Assembly (NCBI RefSeq): GCF_000315625.1
Contig: NW_005434632.1
Coordinates: 420,899-484,898 of the forward strand
DNA length: 64,000 nt
Direction of reading: 5' to 3'
DNA from: Guillardia theta CCMP2712
Taxonomy: Eukaryota > Protista > Cryptophyta
The notes beneath the pieces were generated by a model. It was not told the DNA's origin and did no database searches. It saw only the letters and a list, made by a program, of their open reading frames with translations. Numbering within the stretch: the first letter of the stretch is position 1; each line of letters begins with the position of its first letter. This document shows positions 11,017 through 19,595 of this stretch, in pieces. The translations under genes were made by a program, and so were the position numbers.

Positions 11017-13240
11017 TTATCGGTGGGATGAGCGTCCAGCGCCCGCCAGCAGGGATGCTGATGCAAAATTAAGAAGGCGGGGGGCGCAATGTTTTGATGG
11101 GAGAAAGGGGGGTAGGGGTGTAGAACAAACGGACGGGGTCATACATGGGAGAATCAGGGGGTGAAGGGGAAGGAGGGGTGGAGGCACCTGCAAGCGCAAT
11201 GTCTTGATCCGTAGTCGGCCTCCCAACACTAAGTCGCACAGCTCTGCGAGGGAGGCAGCAAGGTCAGTGATGGTTCCGGATGCGGAGATGGCAGCACCTG
11301 AAAGCTTTGTCCTTGCTGATGTTCATAGCCTTGAGGACATGGCTGACCTGATGATCCAATGTGCTCAGAAGCCGGGATTGAACCGATCTCGTTCTTACAT
11401 GCCCCGTCTGCCCTGCGTGACAAGCACTGCCTGCAGAGAAGGCTAGGCGATCGGCTGTCTGAGCAATGATCTGAAGATCGCCTTAAGGGAACAATCGCAG
11501 TCAGGAAAATCTAGCGAGTTATACCTGGTCGTTGGTTGGGGACGAAATTGGAAACGAAATCTGCAGAAGTCACCATGAGATCGAACACACGAGAAGGGGA
11601 GGTTGAGCACGTTGAGGGTATTTGGGAGACGACGCTCAGGATGCCTGCACAAGCACTCACGAAGCACATCGAACCTGCGGATCAATACCCGTTGAGCTCT
11701 ATACCCGGAATAGCCTGGTGATCACTCACTGAGTCAGCGGACCAGCGGCATCATGGAGCGGTTGAAAATAGCATCATGCCTTTGCCAGTAAATCATGCAG
11801 CAGATCTCTCATCTTGCGGAGATGTTCGGAGTCTTTCAGAAGGTTGTCCTTGCAGACCTTGCATGCCGCTCCCAACGCCACGAGGTGCCTGCGAAGAACA
11901 GTTGGGGAAGTGGAAAGAATTGATAGTGATGAATGTCAAGATTCAGCAGGAGATCGATGAGAACAACAACAAGGGACAAGTAGAAGGAACAAGACAGAGA
12001 GCATTCATACATGGTGTTTTCTGTGCCGGCCCTTCGTCCTCGCTCGTGCCCTGCACCATGCATGAAGCTGCATCGCGTCATTCTTGTGTAAGGAAAGGGA
12101 ACGAGAGCTCTCACTTGGGAAGTTCGGTTCCATGACGGATGTACAACGCTCCGACCCCAGCAGGAGCATAGAGCTTGTGACCTGGCCAAGTTCCGGAGTC
12201 CGTTAACGTGTTCGCTACAACATGCTTTGCATGTTCACCAGCGACGGTCAAGAAGTCGACTCCGAGGTCATTCACGTCAACAGGGATCTAGAGATAACTT
12301 TCATTGCCCTGCCTGAAAGCGGCAAGCTCAACCTTGCCAATCGCTTGCGAGGCATCGGTGTGTACCAGGACGCCTGCGAGTAAAATCAGGAAGACCGGGG
12401 CGCCCACCAGTAGTCCGGCACCTTTGCTCCTTGCGATCTGGGCAATGCTCCGGATGTCGTTGATGGTTCCTGTCTCATTGTTCGCCAGCATGACTGCAAG
12501 GGGTGGATTTAAGTGGCGCCAGCAACACAGGAAAGGATACTCGTAACAAGGGCCGTGTCTTCCCTTATGGCAGCTCGCACTTGCTCGGGGTCAACCTCTC
12601 CGTACTCGTTGACCCCCACGTGCGTGATCTCCATGCCGTGAACCTCCTCGAGATACTTGCAGCACTCCAGCACGGCGACATGCTCGGCTGCGCTCGTCAC
12701 GATGTGTCTCTTGGTCTTCCTCAACCTCTCGGCTGTTCCTTTGAGCGCCCAGTTGATCGACTCCGTTCCCCCTGAGGTAAAGAACACCTCCTCACTCGAG
12801 CACCCGATGAGATCAGCGACCTCCTCTCTCGCCTGCTCGAGTATGAGTGCAGCTGCAGAGGAAGGGAGGGCAGGGAGCTCACGACCTTGGCCACAGCTTC
12901 CTTCTCCTTCACTCCGTACCAGTGCGATGAGCTGGGATTTCCGAACCTCCCCTGTTCCATGTAAAAGAAAGGCATGAGAACGATGTTGTCTTGACTATGC
13001 ACTTCCTCGTTCTCTCTCCTTCCTGGCCCCCAACCCCTCTCCCTCACTCCTCACCTCTCCCTTCTTCTCCCCTCCTCAGCTTCTTCCCACTGAGCGACAG
13101 GTGACCATATCTAACAATCTCTGATGTCTTCCTCTCTCTCTCTCACTCACTCTCACCTCTATGTACGGCTTCATCGCCTGCTGCACCTTCTCGTCCAACG
13201 GGGTCGTAGCGTTGTAGTCCAGGTAGACCATGGTCGCCAT
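11017..13240 (-). CDS. Class-V PLP aminotransferase: NifS-like cysteine desulfurase / selenocysteine lyase
   Basis: Exons encode [59 protein letters not shown] (PLP Lys), [30 protein letters not shown] (catalytic Cys) and [11 protein letters not shown]. Confidence 0.92.
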
Positions 13241-13499
13241 AATTTCACCCCACCTACCGTACTGACTTCAACACCCCTACCTACTGAAGTGAAAAACCTA
13301 CCCCTTTAATTACAAGGTTTTTGGTATATATTTACCCGGTACTTGCGTGACCCCACCCTGAAAAATGTGCCGATCAACCAAGTGGATCAACAAGTGTAGG
13401 CTACTGACGAGATTGAGCATGAAAATACAAGATGAACGTGCGCAACCATTCTGATGTCTTCCTACATATCACACGAAAACATTTGAATCAGTTACAAAG

Positions 13500-14600
13500 T
13501 GATGAATGGAAAGAATCACAGTCATTCGTAGTGTAACAAGTAAGATTCTTGAATTTACAGACAGGAAAGGGGACATCGCTCACACAATGCATCGAGAGGA
13601 CTGGGCTCTTCCATCTGAGTTTTAGATATGGTTCGAAGGTGTCATACTACTGAGGTTTCAAACTACATATAGTTGTCATACAACTATGTGGTGTTGTGAA
13701 AAAATTCATCGGCAATGAAACTCAAACGTTCGAATGAATCCATCATTTTCTACTCAGCGCATGACTCGCACAAAGAACAGAAGAATTGAAGCAAGTAGAT
13801 ATTCGTATTTCATTTTTTGCTGCAAAACTTAGAATACTGTGATGGATAGAAATCACAACACTAAATTCATCCCACAAGATCATCTTGCTCTCGTGAAATG
13901 AGAAGAGGTTGAATTCTAAAGCAATTAACGACAAAGGTTTACCAAGGTTGATATTCCTTCAGATCTCGCCAATGCTGCAAACAGGTCCATATCATCATGT
14001 TCTGCAAACTCATGCAAAATCATAAGTCAACTCTTTCTTGTACAGAAGAAACGAACTTATTCAAATACTCTTATGGACCCCAGTCAGAGCCATGAAAGCA
14101 CAAAAAGATGTTCAATGAAAAACACGCAAAGGTGAGAACAAGTTAAATCAAAACAGGATGTCGCAGTGGGCTCTGCGGCGATAGCATACCACGCTGAACA
14201 ATCACATCAGAGACCTCAAAACAGGAGAAACATGAAGACATCACCGAAAACGGCTGTTGAAAGCATTCCTGCGGGTGCAAGCTGCAATCCTTGACCAACA
14301 TGGTGAATTGTTGAGGCAGCATTCTGTCATTGGCAGCCATGACCTGCTTCATGAGAACGCCTCAGCATCTCCGCAGCATGGTTTCTTTGCGGGGCGAACA
14401 CATGAGTTGCACCAAAGGACATGGGTTTCAAGAGGAAGCAGATGTTGGTATTTCAGCAACGCAATCACATCAAGAAGGCAGGGTGTTTGAGATTGGAGCA
14501 TGCAAACTACCTTCTGAAACAGCATGCTCGTGACGTCCTTCCCTCTCTCCTCTCCCCTCCCCGATGCCATCAGCGCCGCTGCTGCCTTGGTCAAGCCCAT
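13500..14600 (-). CDS. Possible multi-exon hypothetical gene
   Basis: ATG at 14600 (MGLTKAAAALMAS) followed by short open segments with splice-like signals. I could not assemble a convincing protein. Confidence 0.25.
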
Positions 14601-14871
14601 TCCAAGCGCCTCCCAAAATATCACGGCGATGCGGGGAGGAGGGGGGCCACAACTTCTTTTAAATAACGGTTTCCATCGCTCCGTTGCAATGTCAACGATA
14701 GAAGTAACGGAAGAATCCAGGATACAGCACAAGGCATGCATGGCAACAGCGACAGTAGGAGGGAGCAGGAGGAGCTAAGAAGGAAAGGAGGAGTGGCAAG
14801 AGGCGCGGCAGTGGAAGAGGGAGCAGGGAGAGGAGCATGGGTGGAAGGAGGAGCAGGGTGAGAGGAGTATC

Positions 14872-17824
14872 GTGCCAATAGATGAGGAGAAGAAGATTGC
14901 AAGTCGAGCATGTATGAAATCGGATATAGAGACTTGGGTGCGATGCAGGAGCATGATGAAATCAGAGATCGAGGCCGGATCAGGAAAGAAACTATGTTTT
15001 TGCATGCATCGGACTCAGAAAAAGAGGGGGTGTTTAGAATGTAGCTGTGAGGAACCAAGAAGTAATCATGTGTTGTGGATTCCTTGTAACGATTCTTCAG
15101 GGCGAGGACTATCTGCATGTGAAAAGCTCACGGAGTGCATCGAGATGCAACGGAGACAGGGCGTAAGAGCCAGGCACGATGACGAAAAGAGCTCAGATCA
15201 GGACCAGGATGACGACGAGGTCATCGGAGTGAAGTACGGAGACTTTGTGCTTGTAGCTTGTGAAGAAGGGCTGCCATTCATCGCCTTCATCTGCGAGCCT
15301 AAGGCTCACATGTGCAAGGGCACTGGGACTGTCAAGGTCATGTGGCTATACAGACAAGACGACGTGGACGCCAAGGTGCTCGTAAGAGAGTCCAAGAGGC
15401 TCAAGTGTCAGGTAGGTGGAGGGGTAAATGTAGTAGGGCAGTCACGAGGGCTGCAGCTGCTGGATCGCAACCGGGAGATTTTCTGGAGTTTCCACATGGA
15501 TGAGTGCCCGTTAGAGAGCATGCTGCGCCATACGAGGGTGCTGGTGCCCTCCAAAGAGCCAGAAGGTCAGTGAAGATGAGAACATGACGAAGTTCTCCTC
15601 AACGTGCTGGCGCTCTTAGATCCGGACAAGCATGTGAAGCAAGACGAGATGATGTGCCGCTTTGTGTTTGATCCGATCAAGGAGAAGTTGTCTCATCTGA
15701 ACTCGAGTAGGGAAAACTCATGCAGCATGCTTCTCTCTGACTTGAGCCTGGTCCTTGTGCGCAGAGCACTGGAGGACCGATTTACAAAACCACATTGAGA
15801 GGGCTAAGAGCATCAACAAGTAAGTTCTCTCGTTTGCGAGCCTCTGACTTTTGGATCGACCCTGTTTCATTATCATGACTTCATGTGGCCCACCTCCCTC
15901 CCTCCCTCCCTCCCTCCCTCCCTCCCTCCCTCCCTCCCTCCCTCCCTCCCTCCCTCCCTTCTGCTGCACCTCATCCCCTCGCCCCCGGGTCGCAAATGCC
16001 TCCAATTTCTGTCTCGCTCCCTCGATTGCCCTTCCTATCTGTTCATACGCGCATCAAGGTATCCGTATGCTATGAAGTCTTCCAAGTCCAAACCCTCGAT
16101 ATTGAAGAAGCCGGCTCGTCGCGAGGATGCTGAAGAGGGGGCGAGTGGTAGCAGGTGTGGACTTGTTCGTGCGGTCAGAATGTGCGTGAAAAACTTTCAA
16201 GTGCTCAGAAGAAACCGGTGAAAGAGAGTGAAGAGAGTCGAGCGAAGGCAACGGGCCAAGCAAGTGAGTCTGCTCAAAAGGTTGCAGAGAATGCAGGGCG
16301 AGACGCAAAGTCCAGGTAAAAAGGAGGAAGGAGGAGGAGAGGAGGAGAAAAATTTCCTTCTTGTTGACATGTAGCAGGGCTGAAGCTAGGATGATCGAGG
16401 CAGCTCTTCGGGCTTCACTTCAAGAACCAACTGCAGCAAGTTCCAAGGGTAGCAGCTTACCTAAGGCGGTCAACACCAAGAAGAATCAGATAGTCCAGAA
16501 GGAGAAGAGCAGGGAGGTAGAGGCGAAGCATGTGGAAGAGAGCGTGAGGATTAATCAAAGGAGGAGGAGAATCATTGAGGAATCTGACGATGAGCTTGAC
16601 AACAAGAGGTAAGACGAAGCTCACACTTACATCTCCCCCCGGTTGACTCGGGCTTGCAGTGAGTCTAGTTCCAAGAGGCTCAAGGGGGCCAACCCGTCAG
16701 CGGCGTGGAAGCAGGAGAAGGTACAGGCAAACGTCAAGGACAGCTCCAACGTCGATCCCAAAGGCTCCCAACCCACCAGCTCCCGTGTGTGTAAGTCTGA
16801 GGAGGTAGACACGAGGCAGCACGAGCCTCCCAAACGAGGCGAAGGGGCTAAGAAGAAGGTGGGAGGCATAACCGTGCCCATCGTCAAGCTCGAGGAGGAG
16901 ATCGGCTCGTCCTCTGCTGCTTCCCCGATGCTGATGCACTCGCGGGAGAGTGCGGTACGAGGAAGGCCATGGCTGCTCTCGCGCAAGATGATCCAGGGTG
17001 GAGGGTGCGAGCGGATGGTCGCAAAGCAAGGGAACATTCTGCAAGAGCAGCTGGCTGAGGTGACGTGGCAGAGCAACCGGCCGCAGCTGATGTCCAAGGA
17101 TGCGCATGACGGAGTATCGGAGATCTTGGAGGAGACGAGGGGAGTGAGGCTAGAGGACGTGAGCGCCGTACGGAGGAGCGAGAGGGAGCATGCGAGGGAC
17201 TGGATGTTCGACAGTGAGGACCTGGGAGGAGCAGGAGGGAAGAAGCTGAAGGAGCCAACGAGGGCGGAAAGGGAGCTGAGGGAGAAGGAGCGATACCTCG
17301 GGCATCTGATAGGGAGGGAGACAGCGACGAGACTGAGGGTCAAGGAGCATGCAGTGTATCGCCTGGTGGAGGCCTTGCAAGGCGTCATCAACCAGTCCGA
17401 CCACTTCGTCGACTTCGCCTGCGGGAACAACAGGTTTGGCAGCATCCTGTGCCAGTGCTTCGGCCTGTCGTGGTCCTCCTACGACGAGGCCGTGCCGGAG
17501 GACAGGAACTACATGGGCAAGAGCTGGATGTTAGCTGGGCCCTCAGACGTCCCAGCGAACGTGGTCATAGGGATCTTCCCTCCACTGCACAAGGGACCGA
17601 TCATGTGTGAGATGTACCTGCAGCATGCTCTCCAATTTCGGCCGAGGCTCCTCGTGCTGCTCGTACCAGCCTCATGCCGCTGGTGCCCGGACAAGAGGAA
17701 GTATGAGGAGCTGATGAGGAGGAAGGGCTTCTGCAGCGAGGTGGACTTTGCTACTGAGCAGGGGCATGGAGACCTGGCTCTGCAGCGAGTGAGCCTGGAC
17801 CTCTTGATCCTCCGGCGGGTATGA
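14872..17824 (+). CDS. Chromatin protein: BAH domain + ubiquitin-interacting motif + C-terminal EDM2-like methyltransferase-fold domain
   Basis: BAH: KYGDFVLV...PFIAFI...VKVMWLYRQDDV...REIFWSFHMDECPLESMLRHTRVL...MCRFVFDP. UIM-like: EARMIEAALRASLQE. C-terminus: HFVDFACGNNRF...SYD...KSWM...VVIGIFPPL...HALQFRPRLLVLLVP. Exons can be joined by GT-AG introns; start uncertain. Confidence 0.75.
15894..15958. repeat. (CCCT)n tetranucleotide microsatellite inside an intron
   Basis: Perfect CCCT run read directly. Confidence 0.95.
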
Positions 17825-18255
17825 GAACCGAGAAGGTCAGAGAGAATGTGATAATGGAAATAGAAATCGGCGATGGCTAGAAAACTGTCCAGCACATACA
17901 GCTGGGTGACTTAAAAGCTGGGAAAGAAGTGGGGAAGGGGTGGGGGATCAGTGCTGGCATGTCCTAACTTTCCCCTCCAGCTCTTCCGGCAAATCATGAC
18001 TGCGATGACTTCATTCTTACAAGATTTCTTCATATTCGTGGCTCGTTGCTCGACGCAAAGTTAAACTCATGCTCCTGATCCTGATCCTGATCCTGATCCT
18101 GCAATTCCATACGTCAGCACATAACAACACTACTCCGGTTCCCCCTCACCTCCATCGCTTCCTGCGTTGTCAGTGAGCGGAGTAGGATTGTTCTGCAAGT
18201 TGGCATTCTGACAAAGAAAAAAACTGATCAGAGACAGGAGGCATCCACACAAAGA

Positions 18256-19250
18256 TCACGTTGGTCTGCTTCTTGAAGGCCACAATCTCCTGGCAAGGAG
18301 GGGTACCCCTACCAACTCCGTGCTTGCCGTCCTTGTCGACTGATCCGGTGCCTTATTACACAGTCAAACACACGAGGCTGTCGACAGGGAGCATTCACAG
18401 TCAGGAGAAGTCTCGTCCTTCTCAGCTTCGTCGATGATGGACCCTGCGACGATGCGTGGAGAAAGCTTGCCGTTCACTACCTGCGACCGCCGTCAGGTTG
18501 TCACACTGTTGTGCTGCTTTTCCTACAGCCATGGTGGGAGCGTTCTCGAGCTCCTTCTCATAGTTTCCTGTCACACCACTGCATGCGCGTTACTCTGAAA
18601 GTGGGCGTGACGGCAGCGCAAGATACCTGGTGATGTACTTGGATTCCGCCCTGTAGTTAGGGAGAGATCCTCGCAACCAGGCCGCCCGCTTGTCGTCCAG
18701 ACCGTCCAACACCTTCTGATACATCTTGGCACCGACCTTTCCGGTCACATCGATGTTGTCCTTGTTGGCAGCGTCAATGATGGCGTCAGCTACCGTCGCA
18801 TCGTCCGAATGTGACCCGTCAACGTTGTTGAACTCTTCCGTCATAGTCTTCTCCATGGTTGGCCCGTTGGCTCCCATGATCGCCTGTGCCTCTACCTCAT
18901 CCGTGGGAACGGAGCCAGTTATAGTGCCAGCTTGGTTGGCAGGCAGATTGTTAAGCTCATTATTGACATCGTTCTGGGCTTCATCCACCATGTTCTGGCC
19001 AACGACTATGTCTTCAAGAGCGGTACGTCTGACCTTAGAGCCGTCCTGGGTTGAGAGCGCGATGACAACGAGGCCGATCAGAATCACTGAAGTTGCGGCA
19101 GCAAAGAATTTCCTTTGGCAAACAAGTTAGTTACGCGGAGAGGAACATGCCAGAGAAAATTCCAAGGACGGTTAACAAGAAGTCGGCAAGATACGAAGAA
19201 CGATCACTATTGTTGTAGTAGAGATCATCATTATGTCATGACATGCTTTC
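18256..19250 (-). CDS. Hypothetical acidic protein with N-terminal hydrophobic anchor
   Basis: Open 165-aa exon (ILIGLVVIALS...EDIVVGQNMVDEAQND) plus downstream short exons. First exon not located. Confidence 0.45.

Positions 19251-19345: not shown

Positions 19346-19595
<250 letters not shown>

Follow-up and report, generated by a model that had tools for sequence, protein, structure and literature searches.

A BAH domain joined to an EDM2-type methyltransferase-like domain with a degenerate active-site motif in the cryptophyte Guillardia theta

The methyltransferase-like domain of EDM2 is central to the expression of plant genes with intronic heterochromatin. Does a single gene of the cryptophyte Guillardia theta join such a domain to a BAH domain and, if so, is the domain still an enzyme? 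The question was raised by a sequence-only reading of 64,000 nucleotides (nt) of contig NW_005434632.1 (assembly GCF_000315625.1, positions 420,899 to 484,898; this whole stretch is the window, and all coordinates refer to it), in which positions 14872-17824 were proposed to encode a single-chain analogue of the plant ASI1-EDM2 system. The window segment 12145-20824 is identical, letter for letter, to positions 433043-441722 of scaffold JH993006.1 in GCA_000315625.1. The gene in question is the annotated GUITHDRAFT_109961 (EKX44177.1 / XP_005831157.1), which lies on the plus strand and has eight exons, a coding sequence at 15145-17824, and a product of 707 amino acids (aa) named "hypothetical protein" by NCBI and "BAH domain-containing protein" by UniRef. 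The peptide strings quoted in the sequence-only reading are all encoded where it placed them. We conclude that GUITHDRAFT_109961 is one real, expressed nuclear gene, and we favor, with some reserve, the view that its product is a chromatin-tethered, catalytically inactive EDM2-type adaptor.

The C-terminal domain was considered first. The precomputed Pfam list for XP_005831157.1 contains PF01426 (BAH) and PF26055 (Mtase_EDM2), neither with the "weak" mark, which corresponds to E<=1e-5. The Pfam copy used for our own scans is without the PF26055 model (it gave no match on plant proteins carrying PF26055 either), and membership was taken from the precomputed list, where PF26055 is also carried by the nearest relative, P0002, and by an EDM2-type protein of Gypsophila. 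Searching residues 511-707 with phmmer against 1.84 billion representatives gave 153 matches at E<=1e-3, a sample that is what one divergent sequence retrieves among 50%-identity representatives. About 98 of these matches form one clade, plant or green-algal where named, which includes proteins of 1000-1400 aa with a DNMT1-RFD domain, NSD-type PHD fingers, and the EDM2-type domain near residue 700, that is, the architecture of EDM2. Plant proteins of this kind (RFD, PHD, and EDM2-type domain), with Oldenlandia and Heliosperma among those named, were matched at E values of about 1e-9. Matches from outside the land plants were found in Bryopsis, a green alga, and in the haptophyte Chrysochromulina, where the protein is named "edm2-like protein1". 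Moreover, hhalign placed residues 551-661 on a profile of 41 plant EDM2 sequences with a probability of 97.6% and an E value of 2.9e-12.

The predicted structure points the same way. The AlphaFold2 (AF2) model of the domain, built from a 52-sequence alignment, has a mean predicted local distance difference test score (pLDDT) of 87 and a predicted template modeling score (pTM) of 0.84, and its nearest Atlas models are three EDM2 clusters with template modeling (TM) scores of 0.83, 0.82, and 0.78 and a root-mean-square deviation (rmsd) of 2.5-2.7 A. Against solved structures, the model is a class I Rossmann methyltransferase, with ErmC' closest (Z 14.9), followed by ErmE, KsgA, METTL5, and DIMT1, with M.TaqI and HemK2 slightly lower; over ErmC', KsgA, and METTL5, Z ranges from 14.9 to 13.9; the Foldseek E value against KsgA is 4.5e-6. 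Sequence and profile searches of the PDB with this domain gave no real match, and the weak matches of motif I to Rossmann methylases agree with the fold. The top hit of those searches, PsbY, was rejected as a repeat artefact on "AGDNRFG". The C-terminal domain is a true EDM2-family Rossmann domain; the fold proposed from the letters of the DNA therefore stands, and the likeness to EDM2 and to Rossmann methyltransferases on which that proposal hung is strong in profile and in structure. The domain and its two diagnostic motifs are located as follows.

17306-17821, plus strand: EDM2-family Rossmann methyltransferase-like domain (modeled residues 536-707; the core, residues 551-661 or 17351-17683, aligns to the plant EDM2 profile).
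17408-17431, plus strand: motif I, VDFACGNN, the loop that binds S-adenosylmethionine (SAM), with D571, G575, and N577 retained.
17570-17590, plus strand: motif IV, GIFPPLH where the family has GLNPPFG; neither the catalytic Asn nor the aromatic stacking residue nor the Gly remains.

Enzymes of the Erm, KsgA, METTL5, DIMT1, M.TaqI, and HemK2 type methylate exocyclic amino groups by means of an N/D-x-P-aromatic loop. Motif conservation was counted in 151 aligned family domains, with denominators that vary by column. Motif I of the family, VDF(C/S)CGxN(D/E)F, has its D in 149/149, its G in 148/149, and its N in 146/149 sequences; the acidic residue of N(Y/F)D after strand 2 is present in 144/148 and the Trp in 143/150. 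Motif IV, GLNPPFG, is similarly constant (N 147/151, P 150/151, P 150/151, F or Y 147/151, G 141/148), and the last strand follows the pattern ALxFxPKLLxLIVP. Motif I, D595 (in SYD), W609, and the last strand are retained in the G. theta domain. Departures from the near-invariant residues are concentrated in motif IV, where the suspected degeneration of NPPF was borne out by the reading GIFPPLH. The Asn is missing in four sequences, and that of G. theta is the only one of the 151 with Phe in its place. P0002 (39% identity, E 1e-20), with the motif GLSPPLV, is also among the four. The two sequences pair in the tree with an SH-like approximate likelihood ratio test (SH-aLRT) support of 85, and the end branch of G. 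theta is 1.92 long, compared with a median of 0.25.

In (D/N)PP(Y/F/W) enzymes, the aromatic residue provides a stacking surface for the flipped base, and the D/N side chain makes a hydrogen bond to the amino group that is the target; METTL14, which has EPPL in this loop, is inactive and is a scaffold for METTL3 (PMC5023411). Because FPPLH replaces NPPFG, because the D/N and the aromatic residue bind and stack the target base in this enzyme class, and because METTL14 with its EPPL is inactive, the G. theta domain is probably a pseudo-enzyme, which may still bind SAM. The alternative that survives best, unlikely as we judge it, is that the domain is still an active SAM-dependent methyltransferase, in which FPPL would suit another acceptor or substrate and the BAH domain would direct the activity to marked chromatin. 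Such an enzyme would fit the retention of all of D571, G575, N577, D595, and W609, a fold that is confidently predicted as a complete class I Rossmann domain, and the report, as a review cites it, that the rice protein EDM2L alters the m6A (N6-methyladenosine) landscape (cited in PMC11286456); it is hard to reconcile with the loss of an Asn and an aromatic residue each present in 147/151 relatives, and of the Gly that follows, when those are the residues that position and stack the adenine in the characterized enzymes and when METTL14 with EPPL is inactive (PMC5023411). The very long branch also speaks against it, as it suggests relaxed or shifted constraint.

The probable pseudo-enzyme domain is preceded by a BAH domain, as had been proposed. 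In the spliced protein, PF01426 scores 34.5 bits against a Pfam gathering cut-off of 30.8 and covers residues 29-151 (profile positions 3-119 of 121), while the unspliced open reading frame gives a weak 21.6 bits. The sole PDB chain matched by the BAH sequence is 7CCE (E 4.4e-6), the BAH domain of Arabidopsis AIPP3 with a bound H3K27me3 peptide (PMC7718874), and the likeness extends into the helix after the BAH domain. BAH domains that read H3K27me3 are distinguished by the aromatic cage Y149/W170/Y172 of AIPP3 together with H198 and D200, the His and Asp recognizing H3P30 (Zhang et al. 2020, PMC7718874). In the pairwise alignment to 7CCE, these residues correspond to F45/W67/Y69/H102/D104 of the G. 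theta protein, so that all five signature positions are kept with one Tyr changed to Phe. Judged by its residues, the BAH domain has the full signature of methyl-lysine (H3K27me3-type) readers. In the predicted Atlas model of the BAH region, BAH-TFIIS (AIPP3-like) and "ANTI-SILENCING 1-like" clusters are equal at a TM score of 0.65, and therefore shape alone does not decide between the BAH families. One repressive chromatin state of G. theta, found on silent genes and some transposons, shows enrichment of H3K9me1, H3K27me3, and H3K79me1 (bioRxiv 10.1101/2025.03.17.643675); a mark that matches the BAH signature therefore exists in the same organism.

The two domains are separated by a linker of about 380 residues (about 166-545), of which 36% are charged and 19% hydrophobic, with several K/R clusters. 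This linker is probably disordered and has no match to a Pfam family at E<=10. A helix in it, AEARMIEAALRASLQE (residues 244-259), fits the consensus of the ubiquitin-interacting motif (UIM) by eye. With a 35-residue query, it scores 12.9 bits (E 0.11) against the UIM model PF02809, below the cut-off of 21; it was not reported in the scan of the whole protein, and its flank is basic rather than acidic. Neither the UIM nor the ubiquitin sensing built on this sub-threshold match was upheld. Similarly, no PHD finger or RFD-like N-terminus was found in the 707 residues, where Pfam finds the BAH domain alone.

How unusual this arrangement is was examined by a Pfam scan of all 149 other family members. 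PHD_NSD is the usual partner of the EDM2-type domain, being found in 74/149 (15 + 30 + 29 in three scan batches), and DNMT1-RFD was found in 2 + 22 + 19 of the 149 in the same three batches. One member has a Tudor domain, and one Atlas cluster is named "DM2 domain-containing protein". BAH was found in 0/149. Chromatin readers are thus a recurrent partner of the EDM2-type module, and among them BAH has so far been seen in G. theta alone. The contig of P0002 (JGI 3300017172, Ga0186174_108373) is cut at its 5' end, where an N-terminal partner domain may lie. A phmmer search of the BAH domain and linker against 150 family matches found nothing, and a metagenome scan with the alignment of G. theta and P0002 gave 333 pattern matches, of which 0 were confirmed.

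Other features of the family were also observed. After its domain, P0002 has a tail of about 270 residues (residues ~170-435) in which R, D, and E are frequent and RDRY/GREDRY-like units recur. It brings to mind the charged tails of RNA-processing factors. Stand-alone members of 140-330 aa (P0012, P0026, P0040, P0052, P0083, P0097, and others) form a clade of their own. Atlas clusters of similar size are labeled mostly as viral (Nucleocytoviricota, Uroviricota), and the EDM2-type domain may have been exchanged between giant viruses or phages and eukaryotes.

The adaptor that we favor would work as follows. The BAH domain would dock the protein on methylated nucleosomes, probably those marked by H3K27me3. 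The EDM2-type domain would no longer methylate and would instead serve to bind nucleic acid, SAM, or a partner protein, much in the way that METTL14 with its EPPL supports METTL3. By analogy with the plant EDM2/ASI1/AIPP1 complex, the adaptor may then couple repressive chromatin to the handling of nascent RNA. We infer all three of its elements: the histone mark that is read, the loss of activity, and the role in RNA processing.

Several points weigh against this adaptor. The retained SAM-binding motifs could mean a still-active enzyme with an unusual acceptor. The alignment given to AF2 contained family members, so that the TM scores of 0.78-0.83 to EDM2 models are not independent of the sequence evidence. 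The cage was assigned from one pairwise alignment, in which Phe stands opposite Y149 of AIPP3; AF2 given the BAH sequence alone reached a pLDDT of 38, and that model was not used. BAH cages can also read methyl-lysines other than H3K27me3. Pfam found no RRM or other RNA-binding domain in the whole protein or in pieces of the linker, and the link to RNA processing is an analogy. Finally, no full-length orthologue was found by word-index protein searches, which depend on few shared words and a length window and give no evidence of absence; they returned nothing or a single plant EDM2, and a 157-aa fragment stands for the cluster to which the G. theta protein belongs.

The BAH-EDM2 fusion is consistent with an old partnership of BAH readers and the EDM2-type module. 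A bolder "Rosetta stone" reading goes further, and we hold it to be doubtful. Under it, BAH readers and the EDM2 module would be old partners outside the land plants, and the core job of the EDM2 fold would be non-catalytic, namely the binding of nascent RNA or of a partner on repressive chromatin. A cryptophyte lineage (G. theta and its SPPL relative) would have long kept the module after the loss of the Asn, and the single chain would link chromatin of the H3K27me3 type with RNA processing.

Arabidopsis EDM2 is a chromatin-binding protein that brings ASI1/IBM2 (BAH + RRM) and AIPP1 to introns containing heterochromatin, where polyadenylation is thereby controlled (PMC7529245, PMC11265718). 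The G. theta protein could be a single-chain equivalent of ASI1/IBM2-AIPP1-EDM2 that binds intragenic heterochromatin, blocks premature polyadenylation, and senses ubiquitin through its UIM, which we consider improbable. It is true that the BAH domain of ASI1 and the methyltransferase-like domain of EDM2 meet in one Arabidopsis complex (PMC7529245, PMC11265718), and ASI1-like BAH models match the predicted BAH region at a TM score of 0.65, but the G. theta protein has no RRM and no PHD finger, its UIM is below threshold, and its catalytic motif is lost. Moreover, the nearest solved BAH domain is that of AIPP3, a reader of H3K27me3 in the transcription-repressing BAH-PHD-CPL2 complex (Zhang et al. 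2020, PMC7718874).

The adaptor presupposes that both domains are made as one polypeptide. Four sequencing runs, whose label as RNA is a guess, were compared with positions 13200-19100 of the window. Spliced contigs of runs X1, X2, and X5, from three studies, share the same seven GT-AG introns, and they are RNA-derived because contigs of genomic DNA would not be without these introns. The main contigs start at the BAH exon (15104 or 15306), and the 5' ends of the high-depth contigs lie at 15099-15104. All seven joints, from the BAH exon as far as the 3' untranslated region (UTR), are spanned by a single contig in X2 (2211 nt) and another in X5 (2022 nt). Once the exons are joined, no stop codon interrupts the frame, and its translation from the ATG at 15145 matches the public 707-aa model exactly. 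Therefore, one transcript carries the BAH and the EDM2-type domain, as had been proposed, and there are not two separate genes. That the fusion is an artefact of annotation or assembly, with two adjacent genes merged, is scarcely credible: transcript contigs do end near 15099-15104, and 14894-15059, further upstream, is covered by a low-depth contig of its own, but this break lies upstream of the ATG and not between the two domains, no transcript start or end is seen between 15700 and 17300, the frame never closes, and single contigs of the three studies, which begin at 15104 or 15306 in the BAH exon, cross seven spliced joints to reach the 3' UTR. The gene is built as follows.

14872-15144, plus strand: the Cys-rich stretch, an open frame that precedes the ATG and lies outside the annotated protein; probably 5' UTR or part of a minor isoform.
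15145-15411, plus strand: coding exon 1, residues 1-89, with an acidic N-terminus and the N-terminal half of the BAH domain, where F45, W67, and Y69 of the cage lie; the 15411/15457 joint is seen in three runs.
15412-15456, plus strand: intron 1 (45 nt), GT-AG, from contig joints.
15457-15565, plus strand: coding exon 2, BAH domain continued, with H102 and D104 in FHMD (joints, translation, and alignment to 7CCE).
15566-15619, plus strand: intron 2 (54 nt), GT-AG, from contig joints.
15620-15706, plus strand: coding exon 3, last part of the BAH domain plus the helix after it (joints; the Pfam BAH match, residues 29-151, corresponds to 15229-15696 once spliced).
15707-15764, plus strand: intron 3 (58 nt), GT-AG, from contig joints.
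15765-15819, plus strand: coding exon 4 (contig joints and translation).
15820-16058, plus strand: intron 4 (239 nt, the longest), from contig joints, with a (CCTC)n microsatellite at 15893-15959.
16059-16154, plus strand: coding exon 5, start of the charged low-complexity linker (contig joints and translation).
16155-16201, plus strand: intron 5 (47 nt), GT-AG, from contig joints.
16202-16315, plus strand: coding exon 6, linker (contig joints and translation).
16316-16377, plus strand: intron 6 (62 nt), GT-AG, from contig joints.
16378-16608, plus strand: coding exon 7, linker with the UIM-like helix at 16379-16426 (contig joints and translation).
16609-16659, plus strand: intron 7 (51 nt), GT-AG, from contig joints.
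16660-17824, plus strand: coding exon 8 with the stop codon, the remaining linker, and the entire EDM2-type domain (joints and translation).
17825-17920, plus strand: 3' UTR, at least to 17920 (contig 3' ends at 17869-17920).

The introns measure 45-239 nt, and intron 4 is the only one with a repeat; the description of long repeat-filled introns does not apply to this gene. In the raw reads of run X17, of which about 6% were read, the minus-strand neighbor is covered and GUITHDRAFT_109961 is not, which has no bearing on its expression. In X2, the letters of one contig agree with the BAH exon from 15251 on, but the 255 before them are unrelated; an alternative 5' exon, a paralogue, or a chimera is possible.

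The Cys-rich stretch, which had been read as the N-terminus of the protein, lies in a frame that is open upstream as far as 14872 and has an in-frame ATG at 14914. Its 91 residues gave no Pfam match even at E<=10, and the sole contig over it (14894-15059) has a depth of 3.2, compared with 144 for the main transcript, and is unjoined to the main contig. Because the annotated start is at 15145, the main contigs end at 15099-15104, and the stretch has neither a joined contig nor a Pfam match, it is probably 5' UTR or a minor isoform and not part of the main protein. A 39-nt in-frame intron at 15062-15100, which would join the stretch to the protein, was rejected, as no joint supports it. There is little space for more upstream exons, since the divergent minus-strand gene starts near 14600-14700. 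Between the divergent genes, just upstream of the Cys-rich frame, positions 14799-14867 hold a purine-rich imperfect tandem repeat with periods of 30 and 17.

On the minus strand, a spliced transcript was observed at 13200-14700, with CT..AC joints at 13252-13299, 13357-13941, 14194-14244, and 14347-14510; its strand is supported by the stranded raw reads of X17. It links what is annotated as a separate 54-aa gene (14148-14525) to the exons of an Aminotran_5 gene with an annotated end at 13231. The two may be one gene with its 5' end near 14600-14700, divergent from the BAH gene. Within 14341-14511, the X17 raw reads contain alternative minus-strand joints, 14342-14508 (6 reads) and 14347-14510 (18 reads), which suggests alternative use of splice sites in the 5' region of this neighbor. 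Downstream of another minus-strand gene, at about 18067-18991, positions 19346-19595 form a perfect (ACA)83 array of 250 nt, which reads as a long poly-Asn or poly-Leu frame depending on the strand.

Whether the methyltransferase-like domain of EDM2 acts as an enzyme is unsettled, the sole activity-related report that we found being the one on rice EDM2L and m6A, in the form in which the review cites it. A natural family member that has the fold and the cofactor motifs, is without the catalytic loop, and is wired to a histone-mark reader is a test case for a non-catalytic role. The matches in G. theta, the haptophyte Chrysochromulina, and the green alga Bryopsis add evidence that the EDM2-type domain extends beyond plants, and H3K27me3 maps now exist for G. 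theta. The practical value is modest: a hypothetical protein gains a testable function and PF26055 gains a BAH-linked pseudo-enzyme branch. The protein had been called undescribed, which stands for the literature, where we found no paper mentioning PF26055, the G. theta protein, or the BAH-EDM2 pairing, and falls for the databases, as BAH and Mtase_EDM2 are both assigned to XP_005831157.1 in public precomputed Pfam data. The domain family itself is a known one, found here with a new partner and an active site that has degenerated, and for this lineage it had not previously been discussed.

Several known systems can be set beside the G. theta protein. The closest solved folds are the RNA adenine-N6 methyltransferases Erm, KsgA/DIMT1, and METTL5 (Z 14.9-13.4, rmsd 2.3-3.0 A over 144-159 residues), which have the same motif order, with motif I before motif IV. 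However, identity to them is only 8-16%, they keep N-x-P-Y or NPPF, and the G. theta protein has no rRNA-binding C-terminal domain. METTL14 shares the xPPL loop in place of (D/N)PP(aromatic) in an otherwise intact fold and is the precedent for a non-catalytic scaffold (PMC5023411), but it belongs to another family (MT-A70) with permuted topology and no longer binds SAM, the motifs for which are retained in G. theta. The H3K27me3-reading BAH domains of AIPP3/BDT1, EBS, SHL, and BAHD1 are alike in the aromatic cage, the His and Asp, and the helix after the BAH domain; in G. theta, Phe takes the place of Tyr at the first cage position, a TFIIS or PHD partner domain is absent, and binding is predicted.

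The plant proteins themselves can be compared as well. The N6-adenine methyltransferase-like "ELP" domain (PF26055) of Arabidopsis EDM2 and rice EDM2L is homologous to the C-terminal domain of the G. theta protein; common to them are VDFxCGxNxF, an acidic residue of the NYD type, the W, and the ALxFxPxLLxLxVP strand, and in both cases the domain is joined to a histone-reading module. In G. theta, however, that module is a BAH domain and not RFD-like and PHD fingers, motif IV is FPPL and not NPPF, the domain stands at the C-terminus with no Pro-rich tail, and the organism is a cryptophyte and not a plant; the protein is not an EDM2 orthologue. ASI1/IBM2 also has a BAH domain, although ASI1-like clusters fit the predicted BAH region no better than other BAH families do (TM 0.65), and it has an RRM that the G. 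theta protein does not. In plants, ASI1/IBM2 works with EDM2 through AIPP1, while in G. theta the two modules are covalently linked with no AIPP1 bridge. Having neither the RRM found in ASI1 nor the PHD fingers found in EDM2, the G. theta protein is a new pairing of two modules and not a fusion of ASI1 and EDM2, for which "single-chain ASI1-EDM2" is a plausible analogy.

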